Positions 24,043 through 38,125 of a stretch of DNA of 64,000 nucleotides are shown here, one piece after another; the stretch's first letter is position 1; each line of letters opens with the position of its first letter. The position numbers and the translations under genes are program-made. The DNA is from Oikopleura dioica (taxonomy: Eukaryota; Animalia; Chordata). Location: contig OU015569.1 in the NCBI GenBank assembly GCA_907165135.1, positions 9,734,001 through 9,798,000 of the forward strand, written 5' to 3'. A model generated the notes under the pieces. That model was not told where the DNA came from and ran no database searches. It saw only the letters and a program-made list of their open reading frames with translations.

Positions 24043-27000
24043 CTAGGATTCCATCTTTTCATCTTCATCAGATGAAGATTCAGACTCGGAATCTGAATCT
24101 TCGGCTTCGGCAACATTCAACTTGATCTCGTATTCTTGATCACATCCGGCGTACGCATCACACATAAGGTAGAGGAGGTAAGTCTGCTCGCCAGCCTAAA
24201 TTGATAACATGCTCAGTAATGGATCGTAGAGAATGAGCTAACCTTTTGGGGAACAACCTCCAGCGTCACTTTCTTTTTCTGTTGGAGGGTAATGTGCTTG
24301 ATCGCGAGCAAGTGATTGCTCTTCGGATCCCCGACGACACACCACCATCCTTCATCACGTTTTCCAGGGTAAAATGGCGCTACATTATATCTTTAAAACT
24401 TGCTTATTAACCAAATGAATTACCAATAACATCTCCCGCGAGATCGGCTTCTCGCTCAAGAGTTATATGAACATTCGTCGGCCTGTTAGTAGCAGCATCT
24501 TCTGGGTCTTCCACAGTATGGTTCATCTCGATATTCGGATATCTGAACCAATCATAAAGATGCTGCGAACAACTTGAAACGTACCTGTTGCAAAATCGTG
24601 CAACATTCGCCATCTCTGCGTCTCCAAGCTTGAGAAGGTTGTCTCTTTCATCATTTTCCATCTCGATGATATCGAAAACAGAGTCGATATCTTTTCCACG
24701 ACATTTGGTGACCATTTCAACGCTGAAGTGAGGAATCTGTCGAAGGTAAGAGTCCTTGTTCCACACGGCCTGGAAAAATAACAATAAAAGGGGATTGAAT
24801 GTGTTTTAGTACCTGGGTAAGATTTTGTGCGAGCTCCATCGCAGCGAGTGCTGGATTCAGCCAGCCGTTGGAAGCAAGAACATCCACACACGCCGAAATC
24901 AATCGAATCGCAATTGGCAGGATCTCTTGAACGTCAAGGGCAATCTCTGGGGGAAGCTCGAGACGGGACATATGAGCCTAATATATTATTACCAAACAAA
25001 ACATTGCATAATTTATACTTGAAGCAGAAGATTAGCCTTGATATGAGGATCAGACAGCTTTGGCTGAATCGGTTTGTAAGGGACCTTCTGGACCAGTTGT
25101 CGGAGGATATCATCTTCGTGATGACGCATCGGCAGGTTTTGGAACTCTGCAGCGTTCGAGATGATCTCGATCAAACCTAAATGCTCGATAGAAAATCATC
25201 TAAAATTCAAGCATTTTACCTTTGGTCTTTGTCTTCTCGGTCAGAGACATCGAAAACAACTCGATGGTAGTATGTTGTACATAATAATAGGCACCGATCA
25301 TTCCCATATTCAGTGGCGAAACATCCACTTCATTTTCAATTGCGATGCACTTGATCTGCTTCAGGTCATCTAGGGTTGTCTCGACGAGCTCTGACAAGTT
25401 GTCGGACAGATGTCGATGAGTCGTTCCCTAATACGACTTTGAAAATAGCTATTTCATAAAAATTTTTACCTGTAGGTTGTAGTAGTTGGGGTTCTGCGTC
25501 ATTCGGCGATAAAGGAAGGTCCACGTCAGGTAGTCAACTGCATCCTTAAAAACTGGTAGATAAAAATCAACAATTAACATATACCTGTTTGTTTTCGATC
25601 GTCTTGGTAACAACTTCAGCGTTGAAGTGATCGTGGAGCGCCCACTCGAGATGGCTTTCGACGGGAAGAGGTTCGAAAAGGAATTTTTAAAGAATTCCTT
25701 TTTCGAAGATTGACACAGGACTATGCACTAAAACAAGTTGAATAAATTTTTTCATAACGGTGTGTTACCTTTCCTTCTTCGTCCTCGCCTATTCGACCTG
25801 CTCGTCCAAGCATTCGAAGAACATCGGTAACGGCGTAGTCAGAGTATGAGTGAGTTCGACCGTTGTACCATTGGGTATCTTGGATGATCACAGTGTGCGC
25901 TGGAAGATTTAGCTTCCACGTCATGCTGTGAGGCAAAACGAGGACCTGAACGGCATTCTTCGAAAACAGCTGAGAAACTACATCAATTTCTTTTGAGCTG
26001 CTTCCTTCGTGGAGATAACCAACACCATTTCGCAAGGTTTCGACGAGCGTTTCGTCTTCAATGTTGCCTTCTAGGAGACCAGTTAGATCATTCTCATCGC
26101 AGTGAAGGAATCGTGTTGCTTTGTTATCGGAGGCTGCATACGCCAAAAGATCAATCGCGGTAAGTTTCGTTTGCTTTCGCGAAGGAACGTAGATAATAAC
26201 TGGGCGAGTCTGAAAAATATGATAAATATGTCAACTAGATAAGTGAGCTAAACCTTCGCATGTCTTGAGATGGCGACGTATGCAGGCTTCACCATTGATT
26301 GAAGGCGAGAAGGCGCGTGAGAAATCATGAATCCTTGGATGTGCAACTCAAGTTTCACAGATCGAGCTGATGGAGGGAAATTGAAGACGTTGCTTGACTG
26401 GACACCAAGCCATTTTGACAGCTCTTTCGCATTGGCAAGAGACGAGCCAAGAGCGAGGATTCGCAATGGACGTTCTTTTTCAATCTGGGTGGAGAGGAAG
26501 CGCATTCTGGAACAGACGATTTCAACAGCAGGGCCTTTGTCTCCGCCTATGAGGTGAATGTCGTCGACAATGAAGACTTTTACAGCCTGGACATCCTTTC
26601 GCTGCTTCCATCGTCGAGAAAGCACATCCCATCGCTCAACAGTCGAAATAACAATGCCTCGTTTCGCGAGAGCCTTGAGGTCAGGATTTGTTTCTCCGCA
26701 CAAAAGGGAGACATTAACACCGAGCTTGGAGAACCGTTTGGACCAGTCCTTGTAAAGGTGTTCGCACTGACTCTCATTTGGATGAACGTAAACGATGCTC
26801 GGGTTGTCATCATTCGCAAGGTGTCGCAAAATGGCTAGCTCAGCGATAACAGTCTTTCCACTTGTAGGAGCAGTTACTAGAGTATTCGCATCGGCGCCGT
26901 AGATGGCGTTGAAGACCTGAGTTTGGACCGAGTTGAAATGCGAGAAGTTCTGAGCAAAGAATTCTTCAAAATGCTCATTTCGTACGGCCGAGATAGGGAG

Positions 27001-30000
27001 CGGCTGCAGATCGAGAAGTTCGCTAGGTGGGGCATGTTTCTCTGGTAGGATTAAATGCCGGAAAGAGACGGGCAACTGCGTTTCAGCTTGGAGCCATTTG
27101 TCAGAGATGACTCGGATAAAGTATTGAGGTGGCAGAGGTTCGTAAATGGGGACGAAGAAGTTGAGGACATGAGCGTCGTCTTTGTATCGCTTCTTGAGCA
27201 AAAAGAATTCGTTGTGTAGAATGACCTCGGAGTCAACATCTTCCACAAGAATCCAGAATCCCTGGGAGTGCTCGTGGATTTTTTCGTCCCATTGGAAGTC
27301 GGGAGTGATGGTGAGTTCTACGCGGAGAGAAGATCGAGTGATTGGCTGGATGTGGACAGTGAGTTCCAGCTTGGGGAATTGATGGACCATTTTGTAGATA
27401 GTCTTACCCATCTTTGGAACGGAAACAAGCTCACCGATCTCAGCAGCACTCAGATCATACATTGACTCCCAAGGAAAGGATTTCTTCTCGAGCTTTGTGA
27501 TGATCTGAAGAGGACACTTCTTAAATTGTCGCAGCGGGCACATCGACTGCCACATTCGCTTAGTAACCATTTTTGACATGGATAGACATTTTTCTGCGAG
27601 TTGAGCCCAGCCTCGAGAGAGCACGATCTCGTAAATTGCTCGCATGAGACGACCGGCTGACTGGTTCACATGTGTCATGTCGCACATGAGAGCAAACCCA
27701 TCAAGTTTTAGCTGTGAGATGTAGGCTTGCAGAAGAACATTAACTTTTGCTGAGGGCTCATCGATTGATTCTTTGACAGGAATCGGAACCCGCTCCATTA
27801 ATTTCTGGAGTTCAAGCTTTTCTTCGTCGCGGACGGTCAAGAACTGGAACTCTGACGACAGAGAGAACACTCGGAAGAGCTCAATTTCAGAAATCGTTGG
27901 CTTCAAGAGCTGATTGTAAGTTGACATCGATTGATGAGAAATGTAGTAGTGAGAGGCAATTCTACCGAGCTCGGTCGACTGGAAAATTCCAGAGCGACGA
28001 TCGTATCGGATCAGGTGGTGTTTGTCGAGAGTGACAGCAGCCGCATGAACGAGGTCAGTTCTTCGTTGCCTCAGATCAGGATCAGTATCTTCCCAGTTGT
28101 CCTGGAGTCCATATAGCTCTGGATTTTTCTGCATACGCACAAAAAGATATGTGTAAGCCATCCATTCCACTGCATCGTTGATATTCTGAACATTGCCGAG
28201 AACAATCTCGCCGTTTAAGATATCGGGAAGCTTTGCAATCATCTGAGACTCAATCGGGAGCTGCTCGTTCATAAGCGAGAGGTAGTATCGGAGTTCAGAG
28301 TGATTTGTTATAAGAATACCTTCACCAGTTGTATCATACTGAGGTCGACCAGCACGACCCAACATTTGCAAAACATCCAAGGCTGACAACTCAATCCATT
28401 TTCCTTTTTCAGGAGAGTACACCTGTGTTCCTTTGATGATGACACAATAAGCTGGAAGGTTGACACCCCAAGCGAGAGTCGAAGTGGAGACCAAAACCTG
28501 GATATGCTTATCAGCATACAAATCCTCAACAAGACTTCGGTCAACTCTGTTCAAACCAGCGTGATGAATCGCGAAGCCAAATGGCAAAAGATCTTTGAGA
28601 TTAGCGTCTTTCACTTGCTCAGCTTCTGATTTGAGGATCTCAGAAGAGGCAGAGCCTTCTTTGATGAATCCTCCGATAGTTTCTCGCTCCATACAAAGAT
28701 CTCGAATTGCTTTTGCAGTTTTCGCGGTTTCTTTTCGCGAGTGAACGAAAATAAGGACCTGTTTCTGTCCCGCGTGGCCAACAGCTTTTTCATAGCAGAG
28801 CTCGTTCATGAGTTGGTATCTGCGGAGTGCTTTCTTTTCCGTAACGCCAATAAATCGCTGAGAAAGAGGAACAGGACGGTAAGAGTTATCGAAGAAATAG
28901 AGACCATCATCGGGATCGACCCGCAAGAAAGCGGCTACATCCATGTAGTTGGGGAGAGTGGCAGAGAGACCAACGATTCGCACATCGTCGTTAAGACTTT
29001 CAACAGAGCGCATAATTCGACCAGCGAGGGCCTCGAGAACGGGACCACGATCGTCGTGCAACAAGTGGATCTCGTCAATGATGACAAGTCGCACAAGTTG
29101 AGTGTATGATCGCTCACCACCTTTACGGCATATAATATCCCATTTTTCTGGCGTACACACAATCAACTGAGTGCGCATGATTTGCTCCTTAGTCAGCTGA
29201 TGATCACCAGTAAGTTCGTTGACTTCGATTCCATACTTCTGCAGGCGCTTCTTGAAGGAACCAGTCATCTCTGTTACTAAGGAACGCATTGGCGCGACGT
29301 AGATCATTTTGAAATCATCAACATTGATGGTTCCATCCGAATTGATATGCTTTCCGATTTCTCTCATCATTGTAAGGAGAGCGACGTTCGTCTTACCGGC
29401 ACCAGTTGGCGCGCAGACGAGAAGGTTCTGATCTGACTCAAGAGCAGGCTCTTTCAGCTTTGATTGGATTCGATTGAGACTTTGGAAATTTTCGAAAGCT
29501 GGGTGAGTATATTTAGGTAGGTCTGCAATCTTTACCAGCGTTTCAGAAGATGCATCTGGTTTCGGTGGAGGAGGAACAACTACCTCTTCGTATCCCTTCT
29601 TTGTCTGTCTTGTGGATCCTGAAGGGAGGTTACACTTCTTGTTTGTCATGAAGTGGCTGCTTCCTTCGAAGATCAATTCATCCAAATCAAGTGCTTCTTT
29701 CGGTTTCAAGTCTGACTCAACAAGACTTTCTGGATCCGGAGCTTCGGCGAAAGCAGCTTGCTGCTCACGCTTTCGCTTTTTTCGTGGTGCTGAGCCGTCG
29801 TCAGTGTCATTCAACTGCTTGAGGATCTTATTGAGCTGAGCGTCGGCTTTCATTTGAGCTTCAATCTCTTTTTTGTCGGCCTTGTTCGCTCTAGATAGCT
29901 TGGTGCACCAAAGGATCATTTTTGAATGCTCGCAAAGCAGTCGGATAAGGCTAAAGTTCGCCATCGATAGCAACAGTACAAACTGGTTTTCTGCTTGTCG

Positions 30001-31029
30001 TCTGTCTGGCGAGGCTTCCAAAATAGCCAGAACCTCCTCGCATTTCTTCTGCGACTCGTGCGAGTCGTTGTAAACGTCGTTGAGTTTACGCTGAAGCCAG
30101 TACGCATCGATCTCCCGTGGATTCAAATATAGATCGCTCTCTCCGTCGTCTTCGCCTTCTTTGCCACCATCTGCAGCTGACAAAAAGTGCGACGTCGATG
30201 TTTCCACACCTTCAGCTTCTGAGTCGGATTCAGAGTCCCTAATAAAGTTTCGCTCTTGTTCTTCATCTGATCCAGAATCGTCGAACTCGACATTGACTCC
30301 GTATTCGTCAATGTCGCCGACATCTTCACCGGCAGTTTGATTAGTTTGCTGAGTGTAATCAGAGATTTTCTTGCTCAAATTACACAAGAAATGATATGTC
30401 GTGTCTGGCAGTTTTCCCAACATAGCTTCGATTTCACTTCGCTTTTCTAGTAAAGATAATAAAATTGAGTTGATGCTTTCGGATGATTTACCTCTGTCTT
30501 TTGTTTTCTCGTTTTTGAGCTCCATGAGCACCTCGTCGGTGGCCCCGATGAGAACATCTCTAGGTTGGTCACCTAGCTGATTTTGAATGGCAGTGAGGAG
30601 AGCTTCATATGTCTCTCGGGTTTCACGAGTAGTTGGCTTGTAATTAACTCCAACGAGATCGTACATAGAAAATCCACTCTTGAAATAAAAGTTAGCGACG
30701 ATTCGGTAATAAATTTGCGCTACCTTTTGACTTTCCTTCTTCTTTTTCTGCTTATCATCCTCCCTGTACTTTTTCTTCTTGCGCTCTTCTAATTCTTCCT
30801 TCTCTTTGTTTCCCGTCCGGATGGCTCGATCTCCCATTTTTGTCCCGCCGAGTCTCCCGGTAAGGGATTTGACTTCTCCGGTCGCTTCATTTCGCCCTCG
30901 TTTGTCCACCAGTTGTCGGTCAACCTGCAAAATATTTGAAACCGTGGCGAGTTAAATAATTACCTGTAGGACAAGATTACTGTTCGCTTGATAATTGTAC
31001 TGATTACTACGTGCTTGATGGTCAGCCAT
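24043..31029 (-). CDS. SNRNP200: U5 snRNP 200-kDa helicase Brr2
   Basis: [22 protein letters not shown] start, 1560-aa core ORF with [12 protein letters not shown] and tandem helicase/Sec63 cassettes, acidic C-terminus ending at 24043. Confidence 0.98.
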
Positions 31030-31361
31030 GACCAATCAGCAGTATAATCTTAAAAATTCTGATAAGTGAAAGAAATAAGGTACGAATAGTGCTCATTGAA
31101 GGAGCTCGCAGTGATAGGATGTGGCAATCCGAGCGTATACTCAGAACAGGTCGATAAAGGTTCGTTAGTTAAGTGATTTATCCGTAATCGTATGCGACAG
31201 ATCGTGAGTGAACAATAGGGAACCTTGTGGCGGCATAAATAAGTGCGGAAATCAGTGGAGCCATTTTGAGCTAACTAGAAGTATTTTCGCTCAAAATCGC
31301 ACTGCAGTTTTCTCACACCCAAATAATATGCTTTTTTATGTACAGATCAAAATTGATGAGT

Positions 31362-34300
31362 TCAGTCGTCGTCGCTAAATTTTCCAGCTTTTTGATCTTC
31401 TTCTAACTTCTTGAACATTAGTTCCAGCGCTGCTTTTGCGTCTTCCTAAGTTTTGAATAGAGTAAGAACAAAGAAACTTTTTTACCGATGAGTCATGACC
31501 GAACGCCCCATCTTCTGTTTCTTGCTGAATCACCTTTCCACACTCTTCGCGCATCAGTGTTTTCAGACCACGTTTGTAGGGAAGGCCACGTTTATGGGGA
31601 TACACAGCAGCCGTATCAACGCACTTTTTGTGATGCAACTATTGATTAAAAGTTAGCATAAACTCAATGAGAAGCTTTCTTACTTTCAAGGCTTTTAGGT
31701 CGGAATCAAGACTGTGCCCAACTAATATGTCGTCCTCCGAGAGATGATAACGGACCTTTTTCTGTACTTCTTTCAGATCAGCAGTACATGATCTAAGGTC
31801 TGCTTCTGAGATGCCGGAATACTTTTGATTATAATCAATGATCGCGCCCTCAGGTTTACAGAACTGATTCAGTATTATATCCATCTTTTCATCTAAAATT
31901 CACATATGAACATTTATATGGTTGATATGATGCTTTTACTTACCGATAATCGTTACTCTGGCTAACTCGAAGCCGACTACTGTGTAGACCATCTCACAGT
32001 CGAGTGCGAACACGGCAGGATTTCTATCAGGACTATCTGTATGGGCAGCATTGACTTTCTTTAGAGAGGCGAGCCTGTCGTATCCAGTTAAGTCGAGTCG
32101 ATTTTCCTCATGCACATGATTGTCCGAAAACTTACAGGGATCAGAATTTGTGCCGCCGCCGCAACAACTATACTCATGACTCGTTCTTGTCGGATAAAGT
32201 TTCCCTGAGTGGTAGTAGCAATCTCCTTCAGAAACACTTCCGTCAGCCACATCTACTTCAAACTAATTTTTTATATGATTTCGGATTGGGTTGCTGTTCA
32301 TTACCTCAGCTTGACAACGGCAGCATCTTCTCTTTTGTGGGTGACCAGTTGTCATTTTTTTGATTTTGTCCATGTAGGATTGCTTTACCACCACGACTTT
32401 TTTACTTGTTTCCGTTGCTCGGGGATAGCCATAATCCCACTGATCGTCCCTACTGAGTATGTACGTTGACATCGCCTTATAAAGCCTATCACCAGATAAC
32501 TTCGTGAGCTCATGTTTCGGTTTGATTTTGATTTTCTTGGATAGTTTAGGACAAGCTAAACAGATGATGATTTTATGTTTAGAAATAAACAGTACCTAAA
32601 GCCTGATTCATCGAAACTGCTTGAACCTTCGTCAGATCATGTTTTGGCTGAAATCTGGGATCCCCAAAATTAGCCTTCCTGACTTGGGAAATCTTTACAT
32701 TCATAGCGTTGCTGAAGCCACCTCTCGATTGAGCCTTCGTAGCGAGCTCCCTTTCGATCTCAAGAGCAACCTGCTTCGAGAGAATGTCTCCGTGTGGAGG
32801 TCTATCCGGTTGAACCTTCTCAACCAATGCCTTTTGCAAACGTTCTAGATTGGTTTGTCGTTGAGCCATAGGAACTTTGCAATTTTTTATGGGTACGCAT
32901 CTGAAAGCAACATTCGAAACAGCGTGAGCGATTCGAGGATTCTTTTCAGCAGGGTTGTACTCTGTTCCCATTTTTGTTGTAGGTGTTTTTCGAATAGGTT
33001 CAGCTTCGGTTAGTCGTTTGTAGAGATCCTGATTGATGTCTCTAGGCTTCGGCTTTGGAATTGATGGACGCAACGCCTTCGCGGATTCATCGGATGCAGC
33101 AGAGGCAATTTTTTTCTTAGAAAAATCAGCGTCTGGCTTGAGCTGTTTCTTTTTCTTCTCGAGATATGACTCAGTAGCAGACGAGACCTTGTGCAGTCGT
33201 TCTTTATCTGAGCTCTTTTTTAATATGCTTTTTATAGGAGTTGTCGCAGTAACTGGTGCACCACTACAATGTGGTACATATCCCGTATCAAGAACAAGCT
33301 CTTTTGAGACAGGCTCGGGAACGTACTCCTCAATCGTCGATGATCTCTTTCGTCTTTTTGGAGTGTCTGTAGACGTGGATGGCGTCTCGTCTCGTGATCG
33401 TTTTTTCTTATTTTTTCCTTCCTCTTTCTCTTTGTGCGTTTTTTTCGAGCTTTTTTCTTTCGCATGTTTCTTTTCCTTCTCGGTTTTCTTCGATTTTTCC
33501 CTCTCGAGATGTTTTGCTTTTTCTCTCTCCTCTTTTGGCTTCGACTTTTCTGGTTTGTCCGGTTTTTTCTGTTTTTCTGCCTTTAGCTTTTCCGTTTCTT
33601 CAGCTTCTGCTTTTTGGCGTCTCATTTCCTGCACTTTCGATTTGTAAGCTGCGAATTCGAATTGACATTTCGTATTGATGGTTATATCAGCATTTTGCTG
33701 AGGTCCGGTGTCAGATTCCTCATAACCTCCTACCTGAGGCTCGTTTTTTATAGAGATAGGAGCTGGAGCACGTGGTGGCGAGTCTAAGACAATAATCGGA
33801 AGTTCTCGACTAGCTCGCCGCGAAAAAGTATGTGTCGTCACTTCTTGCTTCACGTGAACTTCTTGCTTCACCTGTTGCACCTGAGTTTTGCGTATTTCTG
33901 CAGCTTTTTTCTGGAGATCAGGAAGATACGGTTTGAGGTCACCTTCTGGATTGCAAAGATTCTCGAAGGGGACATATGTTGGTCCAGGTTTGGGCGGAGC
34001 TGGATGAGAAAACCACTGTACGAGCCTTGATGATCTTCCAGTCCTTCTAGCTTGACGGCGCCAATTTGATTAAGATCTTTTTGGTTCGGTCTATCTTCTA
34101 TTTCGTCAGGGATATTTTCAGAGTACTGTGCCATCCGCTACTAGTTGCCGCCTAAATGCGACCCTCGCGACAACTAGTAGCAGTGAAAATGGGCGCTTTC
34201 TCTTCAGCGCTCAAGCGAAAGTTGCCCTTTCTCGGCGGGTCATGCGCCCTAGATTCCCCTTGGCGGGGGCCTAAGCGGCAACTTTTAGCGGTGAGCGCGA

Positions 34301-34542
34301 AGGATAAAAATGCGACCCACGCGACAACTAGTAGCAGTGAAACGGAGCGGCAACTAGTAGCGGATGCCACAGTAATTTAGGCCAAACGCAGCAGCTGATG
34401 TCTTTATGTCCAACTCAAAAAGTCTCTCCTGAGTGTCAATGGTATTGGGATCGACCAAGTGGTTGAACGGACAGAATGAGCTTGTGCAAATCGGACTGCT
34501 CGGACATGGCAAGGAGGATAACTTCGAATTTACTCGGAACAT
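31362..34542 (-). CDS. REXO1: RNA exonuclease 1 (DEDDh), interrupted by a MITE
   Basis: N-terminal CP-x4-C-x4-CPFNH motif, ALDCEMVYT, VGHSLDSDLKAL and GHDSSEDAKAALEL exonuclease motifs. Confidence 0.88.
34126..34372. mobile_element. 247-bp MITE with TA target duplication (Tc1/mariner-like)
   Basis: 26-bp TIRs with 1 mismatch (34126-34151 and 34347-34372), flanked by TA at 34124-25 and 34373-74. Internal 35-bp direct repeats at 34154-34188 and 34308-34342. Confidence 0.9.
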
Positions 34543-35110
34543 GAGGCATCTGAATTGAGAGAAAAGAATTCATTTATTTTCTCGGTTTATGGCACAGGAT
34601 TATTTATGAACGAGTGAATAATAAGAGCGGACAAGACAGAAAATGGGTAAGTACGCTTGAAATTAATAATTTTGTGACCATAATTACTTCAAGTCTATTT
34701 AGTGCTGAAAGTGTAAATCAAAGAGAGACGTCAGAACGAAGTTGAGCAGATTACAGCTCACAAGGCTCTCGGAAATGTAATAACCATCTTACTCAATTAA
34801 ATAGTTACAAGAAGTAATATATAATTACAGAGACAGTGTTATTCATTACAATAGTAACTTTTATTTGGACTTTTTGTTTCATAGGTAGCTTGGAAAGGTT
34901 TTTGAACGAGTTTTATAAGAATAAAAGAACATTGCACAAGATTTATTATAGAACGAGAGTTTTTTTCTTGAATGTGGACTAGTGAAGGATTTTTGGATAT
35001 TGGCGCCTTCGAATAGGAAACTTCTGAAGAAAATAGCCAAGGTCATGTCGTGTTCAGAAATTTGGGCGTGAAGGAATAGACTAAATTTGTAATTAGAACA
35101 TGAAAGGGAA

Positions 35111-38100
35111 TTAACTTTGTACGGGTGGTTTGTTGCCTGCTGGACGCTTTGGAACGACTGGAGGAGGTCTATTTCCGCCGGGTCGCGATGGAATCATTGG
35201 CGCAGCGTGAGAAGGCTTGATGCCAAGCTGGTTCATTCCAGAATTTATCTGATTCATGGCGTTGAGAGTATTCTGAGCACGGCCCAACATTGAGGATGCG
35301 GCACCCGCTGGGCTTGGACGAGGTGGAGGGTTCGTTTTTGATGATGGGGGTATTGGGTTAGACTTAGACATTGGTTTTATTGGAGCGGAAGACGACTTGG
35401 GTGCGGAGGACTCGGAGATCCACGAATTGTCAACCGGCGGGGGCGCTGAGGTAGATACTGTCGATACGTTAATATCTCCGATGACCTTGAGTCCCTCTTT
35501 CAGTGAGTTATACATCCGGATCATATCATCCCGTCTCTGCACCTCCGAATCGGACTCTTCCATGATCATGTTTATGTCACATTGCGCATAAATCCTAAAA
35601 AGAGTTTTCTCGCCGTATATGTTCGAGTTAGTTACATTGCAAGGAGCTCTTCCGCAATAAATGTTTTCGTGTGGTTAATCATCACACCCATAATCATCTT
35701 CGGGGTCATATCTTTGAGCGTTTTCGTCACAATAAGCATATAGCTCTCGACTAAGTTCCTGATCGTTTCGACTTGTCGCTCGAGCTGTGGATCCGCTGAG
35801 ACTCTCTGCTCTTGTTGTTCCTCTGCGCCATCTTCCTTTTCAGCTTGATACTGAACAATTCACGTGAGCTTGCTACTTTCAAAGCGCAACTACCTCTGGA
35901 TAGACCCCAGCTCGTAAGAATGACGCCTTCCAAGATTCTAAGTCTTCTGCGTTATGTACGCTCAAATCAAGTGTTCTGTGGTCTTTGTAGACGTTTCGAT
36001 TTTCAGTGTTGAACAAGGAGAAAGTGAACTTAGCACCGAACATATTGTGGCTTTCCTGACTTCTGAGCTTGAGATTATCTTGAAAGTAAAGTTAGCCCGG
36101 TGGAAATAAGCCATAGTCACCTGCTAACTGGACCATGTACTTCTTGTCCTTTTCTTCGTCGTCCTTGTACCACGAAAGAGTTTCCGCAGTAAGGACGAAC
36201 CAGAACTCTTTACTTCCGCCACGCATTACACCAGTATTCTGCAAGCCAAGCCAGCCACGACGAATAACGTTATTTCCAGCAGTGTTCTGTTTCTTGGAAG
36301 GAACAGAGGACGCTGCTGCTTGCGTGAAGCCAATGAAATCCTAAACGCAAGGAGCTAGCACTTGTGTATTAAAGATAAACAAACCTCGTGGTTGGTATTG
36401 ACATATGCCAGTTCAAAGTCGATGAGGTTTCGAACATGATCTTTGCATTGATTTTCGCGCTCTCTAATATGCTCGCAAACAATTCGATCAACCTCTTCTC
36501 TCAACATTGGAAAAGTGTTCATCGGCTAAATCATGAGAGTCAGTTGAGAGCAATTTACAATTATTTGTACCTCTGAGCAATTTCTCACTGCATTTATAAT
36601 TTCGGTGCAGCATTGCTCGACAAGATTTGCCGGAGCCCTAAAGAGCTGCTCGATTTGCTCTTTGACGATTCTTTCGAAGGCCAAATCAGGAGTGAAGAGA
36701 CCTGATCGAACACCGCGAATATTTTGAATGACAATCTTGATCTCCTTTCGGAGATGCTTCTCATCGATTTTGCGCTCGGCTAAAATGAAAATTGCCTAAT
36801 TAGTACTCATTAACACGTTACCAATGTGAAGTGGAAGTCGCTCGTGAAAGAGGCGATTTATTTTCGCTCCCACGGTGAGCTGGTCTGTTGAAACTGAGCT
36901 TCCCGAACTGCCTGAACCCTCAATGACTTCCTGGAACGAATTGCAGAATTGATTAATGAGCTGTAGCATCGATTTCGTCTTTCTACTGGGATCATTTGGT
37001 GTGTAATGCTGAAACATTCATTATTCCCAATTATTCTTGCTATTCATCGAAGAAGCGCTATGTTCGATTGGGATCTGCCTACCTTGAATTTAGCCACTTC
37101 TTTTTCCATACTAGCAAGTTGCTTCGCTAACGAGTTGCGCAAGGTAGGCAACGTCTCGCGAATGTGATTTGTGAGTTGCTGGTTCAGCACTTGCTGTAGG
37201 TAAGGCGTACCCATTTTGTCTGCCATGTGACGGTAAGAACTGTGGCTCATAAAGAACCTTCTCTCAGCTGAAAATTTTAATGACAAACTGTTTCTTTGGC
37301 CAATGCATACCTGTCATTGCAGCTTTGATGTCTTTTCGCCCTTCGATGTCCTTCTGACTTCTGTTGACTACACCAATGTAGCCCCGACGAAGAGGCAAAA
37401 GTTTGTTCTCAAGGATGTCGCGGGCATCTGTGCCCTGATCCATCAAGTCGAGCTTTGTGATGACTCCTATGGTTCGCAATCCCTGAGGATCTACTTCTTT
37501 TGCCATCTTCATCGCGTCGGAATTCGCCAAATCAGTATTGGCAGGAGAAACAGCGAGAATGAGGCAAGAGTCGCGCCCAATAAATTGCAGGAGCATATCG
37601 CGGATTTGATTTTCAATGTCAGCCGGTTGATCACCAACAGCGACTCTGGTCATTCCGGGCAAATCAACAAGTGTCAGGTTCAATACGTTCGGCGAAAATA
37701 CGCGAAGGTTAATCGGAACGGGCGAAATTCCCTTATTCGAGCCGGTCATTCTGTCTGTTTCTGCTTCAATTTCGTTTCGCACTTCGCTGAAATCAGTGAA
37801 TCGTTTTCCTTTGGCGTGAAGGAACTCGGCCCATTCGCCATGGGGATTGTTCACCAGTTGAAGGACTAGCGGACGACGAGTGACGATGCCACTTCCTCGC
37901 GGCAAGAAATCTTTGCCGACAAAGTTTTCTAGTACCGAGGATTTTCCAGCTGATTGCGAGCCCACGACGGCAATCTTAAATAAATGTAAACGACATTCCT
38001 TGAAACAGGAAGATTACCTGTGGTAAATCGATATCCAGAGATTGACCTGTCTGCTGGAAGGCATCTTGGAGCTTGTTGATGAGTGGAATCATCTGCTCCA

Positions 38101-38125
38101 TGCCCGAGTTTCCTATGTCGCTCAT
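35111..38125 (-). CDS. DNM: Classical dynamin (GTPase, middle, PH, GED, proline-rich tail)
   Basis: [13 protein letters not shown] and TKLD motifs, PH domain ([13 protein letters not shown]), GED (RRDDMIRMY) and a PRD. Confidence 0.96.

Follow-up and report, generated by a model that had tools for sequence, protein, structure and literature searches.

Has a miniature inverted-repeat transposable element (MITE) in the coding sequence of REXO1 broken this gene in the Okinawan reference genome of the larvacean Oikopleura dioica, to all appearances the assembly OKI2018_I69, or is the element on its way to becoming an intron? The question arises in a 64,000-nucleotide stretch of contig OU015569.1 (positions 9,734,001 to 9,798,000; hereafter the window, with positions counted from its first base), in a genus known for extreme intron turnover and unusually tolerant splicing. 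A sequence-only reading of the window had offered two answers: an element neutralized through built-in splicing routes, or a segregating disruptive allele. The second fits the wild haplotypes described below, which have an empty site. With moderate confidence, we favor a disruptive insertion allele of REXO1 that is present in the reference haplotype and absent from the wild haplotypes sampled; it would be a recent loss-of-function or strongly hypomorphic allele, not an element already removed by splicing.

The insertion itself is clear. The element is non-coding, spans 247 bp (34126-34372) and is read here on the minus strand, the coding strand of REXO1, as are all features of gene and element given below. 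Its 26-nt terminal inverted repeats (TIRs), CTGTGGCATCCGCTACTAGTTGCCGC at the 5' end (34347-34372) and a 3' copy at 34126-34151 that ends in CACAG on the coding strand, are complementary at 25 of 26 positions. A TA stands on each side (34373-34374 upstream, 34124-34125 downstream), a target-site duplication where the wild allele has a single TA, and the coding strand runs ...GGC CTA AAT TA, then CTGTGGCATCCGCTACTAGTTGCCGC ... GCGGCAACTAGTAGCGGATGGCACAG, then TA CTC TGA.... These features, including the coincidence of the CACAG end with the insertion boundary, agree with the earlier description of the element. A repeat search of the window returned 28-nt arms (the 26-nt repeat plus TA) at 34124-34151 and 34347-34374 that are 96% complementary, and the TIR pattern occurs at only two places in the window, both of them ends of the MITE, with none expected by chance. 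As RNA, the element folds into a long hairpin of -124 kcal/mol (z = -8 relative to shuffled sequences).

To establish what the site looks like without the element, we rely on wild DNA. A full HMMER search with the long exon returned P0001, a 573-aa open reading frame (ORF) that is 98% identical. P0001 and a variant, P0007, lie on contigs L015, L016, and L143 from three ENA marine-metagenome assemblies, the last of which is recorded under run ERR1726614 of PRJEB4352, a Tara Oceans project. To either side of the MITE, these contigs share 97-98% DNA identity with the window; their sequence across the site is ...GGGCCTAAATTACTCTGAAGAT..., which has a single TA, lacks the element, and encodes GLNYSE[N/D]IP. 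In P0001, a single open frame starts with MFRVNS..., crosses the linker, continues as ...PPKPGPTYVPFENLCNPEG... and extends to the exon's donor, so that the 1.9-kb first exon is open from its start codon. L015 and L143 have equal length and differ at three bases; because they may be re-assemblies of one sample, we count the wild sampling as at least two haplotype variants, not three independent samples. Scanning JGI metagenome contigs for a 16-base pattern of the site gave chance matches only (none of the 120 loci retrieved resembles this locus), the pattern being too short.

The sister lineage of O. dioica gives the same picture. The insertion site lies within a single exon in P0008 (a genomic ORF), P0009 (an nr/UniRef model) and P0010 (from an mRNA contig, L140). 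If the segment had been intronic before the MITE arrived, orthologues should show it; we tested this and the answer was negative, since P0008, P0009, and P0010/L140 all translate through the site. Because the wild empty site is open and the sister mRNA and models are coding there, we conclude that the MITE landed in a coding exon, as originally proposed, 58 codons after the start and in a variable linker, and that it is absent from the wild DNA sampled.

The element is not the only lesion. The window also has a 1-nt deletion at 34009-34012, so that a run of T4 replaces the T5 of the wild allele and shifts the frame by -1, next to a G/A difference at 34014 (34009-34014 in the alignment); the wild alleles have TACAGTAGTTTTTCTCATCC and the window TACAGTGG-TTTTCTCATCC. 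Two changes that destroy the frame, separated by about 115 nt, are thus present in the window haplotype. Because of the deletion, the frame restored by removing the MITE ends at 33868-70. The long downstream frame opens only at 34069. The sequence-only reading had expected removal of the element plus one TA to restore a continuous frame. It had the junction right, as GLNYSENIP is recovered and L015, L016, and L143 show ...AAATTACTCTGAA with a single TA, but not the continuity beyond it. The deletion also accounts for a 44-nt GA-AG intron that had been proposed for the empty allele. The GA is indeed present at 34043-42; the wild allele and the sister-lineage mRNA, however, are one continuous frame and need no intron here, and the deletion alone creates the frame change that such an intron would bridge.

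Read as it stands, the allele reaches its first stop, TAG at 34356-54, inside the MITE as had been noted, which closes a 62-aa ORF (34354-34542). The ATG at 34134, which lies within the element and was described as in frame, opens an 88-aa product only, and the first in-frame Met downstream is more than 130 codons into the exon. Exact look-ups of the 62-aa and 88-aa ORFs of the allele returned no database record, and a word search with the 88-aa ORF returned no match; neither result is a measure of rarity. The searches likewise returned no transcript or gene model of the Okinawan lineage.

Domain matches identify the gene as the orthologue of REXO1 (RNA exonuclease 1 homologue, Elongin A-binding protein 1), in single copy in this assembly. 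Protein searches used single exons or proteins returned from the databases; the MITE flanks were joined only for the alignment with wild contigs and for open-frame tests. The nearest named protein, P0009, is listed for O. dioica as "RNA exonuclease 1 homolog-like" and contains PF15870 (EloA-BP1) at E = 4.8e-15, and the same domain is precomputed for P0010; both proteins are 56-57% identical to the window's first exon along its length. The window exon at 31684-31884 matches DEDDh nucleases, including SDN1 (5z9x; E = 3.6e-9) and ISG20 (E = 1.4e-4). Pfam gave no match on the window's single exons because introns split the domains, EloA-BP1 among them. The likeness to REXO1 lies in orthologues with PF15870 and in window exons with a DEDDh part related to SDN1 and ISG20; the difference is that the Oikopleura proteins have a short Cys3-His-like N-terminal motif without a Pfam match.

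Exon 1 runs from the ATG at 34542 to 32596 and is interrupted in the window. Its first part, preceding the MITE (34375-34542), encodes a conserved MFRV...C-x5-C-x4-C-x3-H...ERLFE N-terminus; the former linker coding segment follows between the MITE and a candidate acceptor (34000-34123), and the remainder (32596-33999) is an intact downstream frame with a pN/pS of 0.14 relative to the wild allele. Exons 2 (32555-32305), 3 (32262-31944, with the ALDCEM motif), 4 (31892-31684), 5 (31638-31486), and 6 (31445-31365, stop 31364-31362) are all open and hold the DEDDh exonuclease part (31362-32555). The five introns are 40-51 nt long and all of the GTA...TAG type, with donors GTACTG, GTAATG, GTAAGT, GTAAGA, and GTAAAA. 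This exon model is matched end to end by the 892-aa P0010, whose source is the 2970-nt Logan contig L140 (run ERR1719223). Because L140 opens with the 3' end of the spliced leader, 12 nt before the ATG, it is a mature, trans-spliced mRNA of the sister lineage. As the 3' end we took a 21-mer of the published leader; followed by GT, it occurs 52 times in the genome, compared to no occurrences of a control pattern.

The allele thus has a cut-and-paste, TA-targeting MITE of a tiny family in the exon 1 linker. As it stands, it yields a 62-residue peptide and leaves the EloA-BP1 and exonuclease parts out of reach. It would be carried in the sequenced male or the laboratory culture. Wild haplotypes of the same lineage, having neither lesion, keep an uninterrupted first exon, as does the sister-lineage mRNA. 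The state of the rest of the gene fits young lesions. Over the remainder of exon 1, the window differs from the wild allele by 27 substitutions in 1403 nt (1.9%) and nine amino acids; judged against P0008 and P0009, the window holds the derived state at two of these amino-acid differences and the wild allele at about three. The downstream gene shows no decay, and its derived changes are evenly shared between window and wild alleles, as expected if the lesions are young.

Could the spliceosome remove both lesions at once? The GT at 34370-34369, supplied by the 5' TIR, follows TAC T in phase 1, and the pyrimidine-rich acceptor ttttctcatccAG, with its AG at 34001-34000, enters the long downstream frame in phase 1, both as first described. 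Joining the two would excise a 371-nt intron that takes out the MITE, the 124-nt linker, and the 1-nt deletion, and would give an 863-aa product that keeps the N-terminal motif, the EloA-BP1 region, and the exonuclease and has 41 linker residues fewer than the wild allele. The frame arithmetic fits, and the part lost is the least conserved of the protein. Splicing in O. dioica is also permissive, with a median intron of 49 bp and 11-12% of introns non-canonical (not GT/AG) in the OKI2018_I69 assembly (PMC8008620) and many GA-AG introns, which have a conserved A at +3 and an upstream AG (PMC7072748). On balance we regard this route as unlikely, judging from the sites themselves.

Our reasons begin with the phase match, which we evaluated by listing all G-N...AG pairs that have their donor ahead of the stop at 34356-54 and link the upstream frame with the downstream one. 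Such in-frame pairs number 40 for GT-AG and 112 for GA/GC/GG-AG; of the 11 GTs from the ATG to the first stop, 10 can each be paired in phase with 3 or more AGs. The phase match is therefore at chance level, and the rescue routes that had been seen as built into the MITE are no better than chance. Among the enumerated pairs, GT 34370 with AG 34000 keeps the most protein and has the best-looking acceptor (ggttttctcatccAG|, 34000-34001); this AG is unused in the wild allele and the orthologues. Site quality was gauged against the gene's own five introns and published statements, since a training set of ORF pairs from the window was too noisy. The candidate donor, ACT|GTGGCA, is weak and unlike the five GTA-type donors of the gene, and it is enclosed in the hairpin's 26-bp terminal stem. 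At 371 nt, the intron would be 7-9 times longer than both the gene's own introns and the genome median (PMC8008620). Exact removal of the MITE and one TA is not available either, as there are no G-N...AG boundaries for it. The MITE's GT has in-frame partners only among host AGs that lie further downstream, and splicing to the element's own terminal CAG would leave 4 extra nucleotides and an immediate TGA. That CAG, which had been taken as meaningful, is the mirror of the inverted repeat's CTGTG end and is common to the intact copies L002, L003, and L005 (the ends of L004 are degraded).

The divergence of the linker bears on the same question. The 124-nt segment at 34000-34123 differs from the wild allele by 8 substitutions (6 nonsynonymous, 2 synonymous) and 1 indel, or 6.5%, which looks neutral, as it might within an intron. 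In the sister lineage, where the linker is certainly translated, its identity is 87.5% compared with 94% for the rest in one comparison and 64% compared with 83% in another. The linker thus evolves about twice as fast even as coding sequence, which explains part, but not all, of the excess. These figures are small numbers, and recombination can keep the downstream exon fresh.

Several observations nevertheless weigh against a disruptive allele. The linker's 6.5%, set against 1.9% for the rest of the exon, exceeds the roughly two-fold excess in the sister lineage. One in-frame splice could take out both lesions, which share a 371-nt interval (34370-34000), and a random second lesion would fall within the 124 nt between the MITE and the acceptor with only about a 5% chance. 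The constrained, undecayed remainder of the gene would also suit a functional allele. The roughly five private substitutions in this MITE copy could mean that the insertion is not brand new, and the 1-nt deletion might be an error left in this Nanopore-based assembly. We regard the divergence pattern as a reason to keep intron birth under consideration, not as support for it. In its full form, the idea is that an intron is being born in a natural population, with the deletion and raised divergence as its first decay and uninterrupted alleles still circulating in the sea; this strikes us as doubtful, a little more so than the splice route by itself.

If the deletion is instead an assembly error in the T run, the real allele would have the MITE only, and it would be either null or translated from the ATG at 34134 into a protein lacking the first 58 residues. 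The assembly is Nanopore-based (PMC8008620), the difference is one of homopolymer length, and restoring T5 brings ATG 34134 into frame with the whole gene. But Illumina reads at about 100x were used to polish the assembly (PMC8008620), and the run has a length of just 4-5 bases and a true substitution as its neighbor. Initiation at ATG 34134 would also be inefficient because the authentic ATG and a 62-codon upstream frame precede it. We consider this explanation improbable.

Rescue by some other path seems to us more improbable still. It could use a different donor and acceptor from the many in-frame pairs, or removal of the MITE combined with a mini-intron, for which a 41-nt GT-AG (34056-34016) and the 44-nt GA-AG (34043-34000) would each repair the deletion in the same way; the gene does have a 40-nt intron. 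It could also use spliced-leader trans-splicing at an AG further downstream, followed by a later start codon, and the orthologue mRNA is indeed trans-spliced. Yet the first step of the mini-intron path, exact removal of the MITE and one TA, meets the lack of G-N...AG boundaries described above. The mini-introns each have a GC content of about 50%, unlike the gene's own introns, which are AT-rich, and the GA donor has the conserved upstream AG but a C instead of the conserved A at +3 (PMC7072748). A later start faces the distance of more than 130 codons to the next in-frame Met.

Returning to the element that produced the disruptive allele we favor, its family is very small. About 11 elements are present in the genome, with 22 matches to the TIR pattern compared to none for a control pattern. 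Four are full copies (100, 96, 96, and 96% identity) with about 5 private substitutions each, a star-like pattern; further relatives are a 93-bp internal-deletion derivative, a 319-bp subfamily (n = 4), and a few solo ends. TA flanks are also found at copies L005, L008, and L010; at L002 and L003, one of the two sides lacks a clean TA. From the TIRs, TA flanks, copies, and hairpin, we therefore conclude that this is a genuine, very low-copy, TA-targeting MITE. We rejected an insertion date based on the 5 private substitutions (2%) of the copy in REXO1, since a cut-and-paste element imports older mutations. The members of the 319-bp sister subfamily lie at C1:1998139-1998457, C4:9385628-9385946, C5:13535012-13535330, and C11:43179-43487; their terminal repeats are nearly identical to those of the MITE, and they are TA-flanked where checked (L008, L010).

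The MITE resembles Stowaway-like, Tc1-mariner-type MITEs in that it is short and non-coding, with 26-nt TIRs, a hairpin body, and several near-identical copies, and its TA duplication is proven by the empty site. It differs in its tiny family and in that no autonomous partner with these ends was found: no inverted TIR pair at the spacing of a Tc1/mariner-type transposon occurs anywhere in the assembly, for either the 247-bp or the 319-bp subfamily. Because of this, we place the MITE in the Tc1-mariner superfamily only provisionally, by its TA duplication alone. When the sites of six other copies (L002-L005, L008, L010) were emptied in silico, none of the six lay in a convincing coding frame; the emptied L002 site lies in 158 codons free of stops, whose coding character is doubtful. 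The family check that had been suggested thus yielded the copy number, but no clear exonic insertion or intron among these six.

How does the allele compare with known systems? Events of this kind are already known, in the form of transposon insertion alleles as well as of introner-type intron gain. In larvaceans, Henriet and colleagues reportedly described MITE-derived non-canonical introns of Fritillaria in 2019. Introners are intron-creating DNA transposons (Huff et al. 2016, as cited in PMC13326754). The likeness to them lies in a MITE within a coding exon, in a larvacean with a spliceosome that tolerates odd sites, and in a GT in the end of the element. In contrast to introners, exact removal is impossible here, the only in-frame route for the MITE's GT also takes 124 nt of host exon, and none of the six other copies checked is a clear intron. 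Insertional null alleles offer the other comparison: the insertion is found in one haplotype and is absent from the wild ones, there is a premature stop, and a second degenerative lesion lies nearby. Unlike in such alleles, decay is absent from the rest of the gene, and the two lesions lie only in a linker that looks dispensable. The locus provides a well-documented transposon insertion variant in a compact chordate genome and a warning that the reference haplotype has a broken REXO1 first exon. If carriers were to splice the MITE out, the filled reference and empty wild alleles would allow a direct test of the birth of a transposon-born intron.

Some smaller observations concern the start of the gene and its surroundings. 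Across Oikopleura lineages, the N-terminal motif (34455-34542) follows the pattern MFRV.S.LS.L.C-x4/5/7-C-x4-C-x3-H. The motif is similar to a CCCH zinc knuckle, without a Pfam match, and the distance from its first cysteine to its second varies. Within it, at 34492-34498, the window differs in frame from the wild allele by a 6-nt indel and 5 clustered substitutions, changing CPSSPIC to CPRLGSGIC. Just upstream, ttctctcaattcAG (34547-34564, with an AG at 34551-34550, 8 nt before the ATG) looks like a spliced-leader trans-splice acceptor. If trans-splicing occurs at 34551-34550, an out-of-frame ATG at 34549-34547 would be the first AUG of the message. On the same strand, REXO1 lies between a dynamin gene (about 38125-35111) and a Brr2-type helicase gene (from about 30930), so that three unrelated housekeeping genes stand head to tail (26248-38125) with gaps of about 0.3-0.6 kb, a packing compatible with the operon-like arrangement known in this species.

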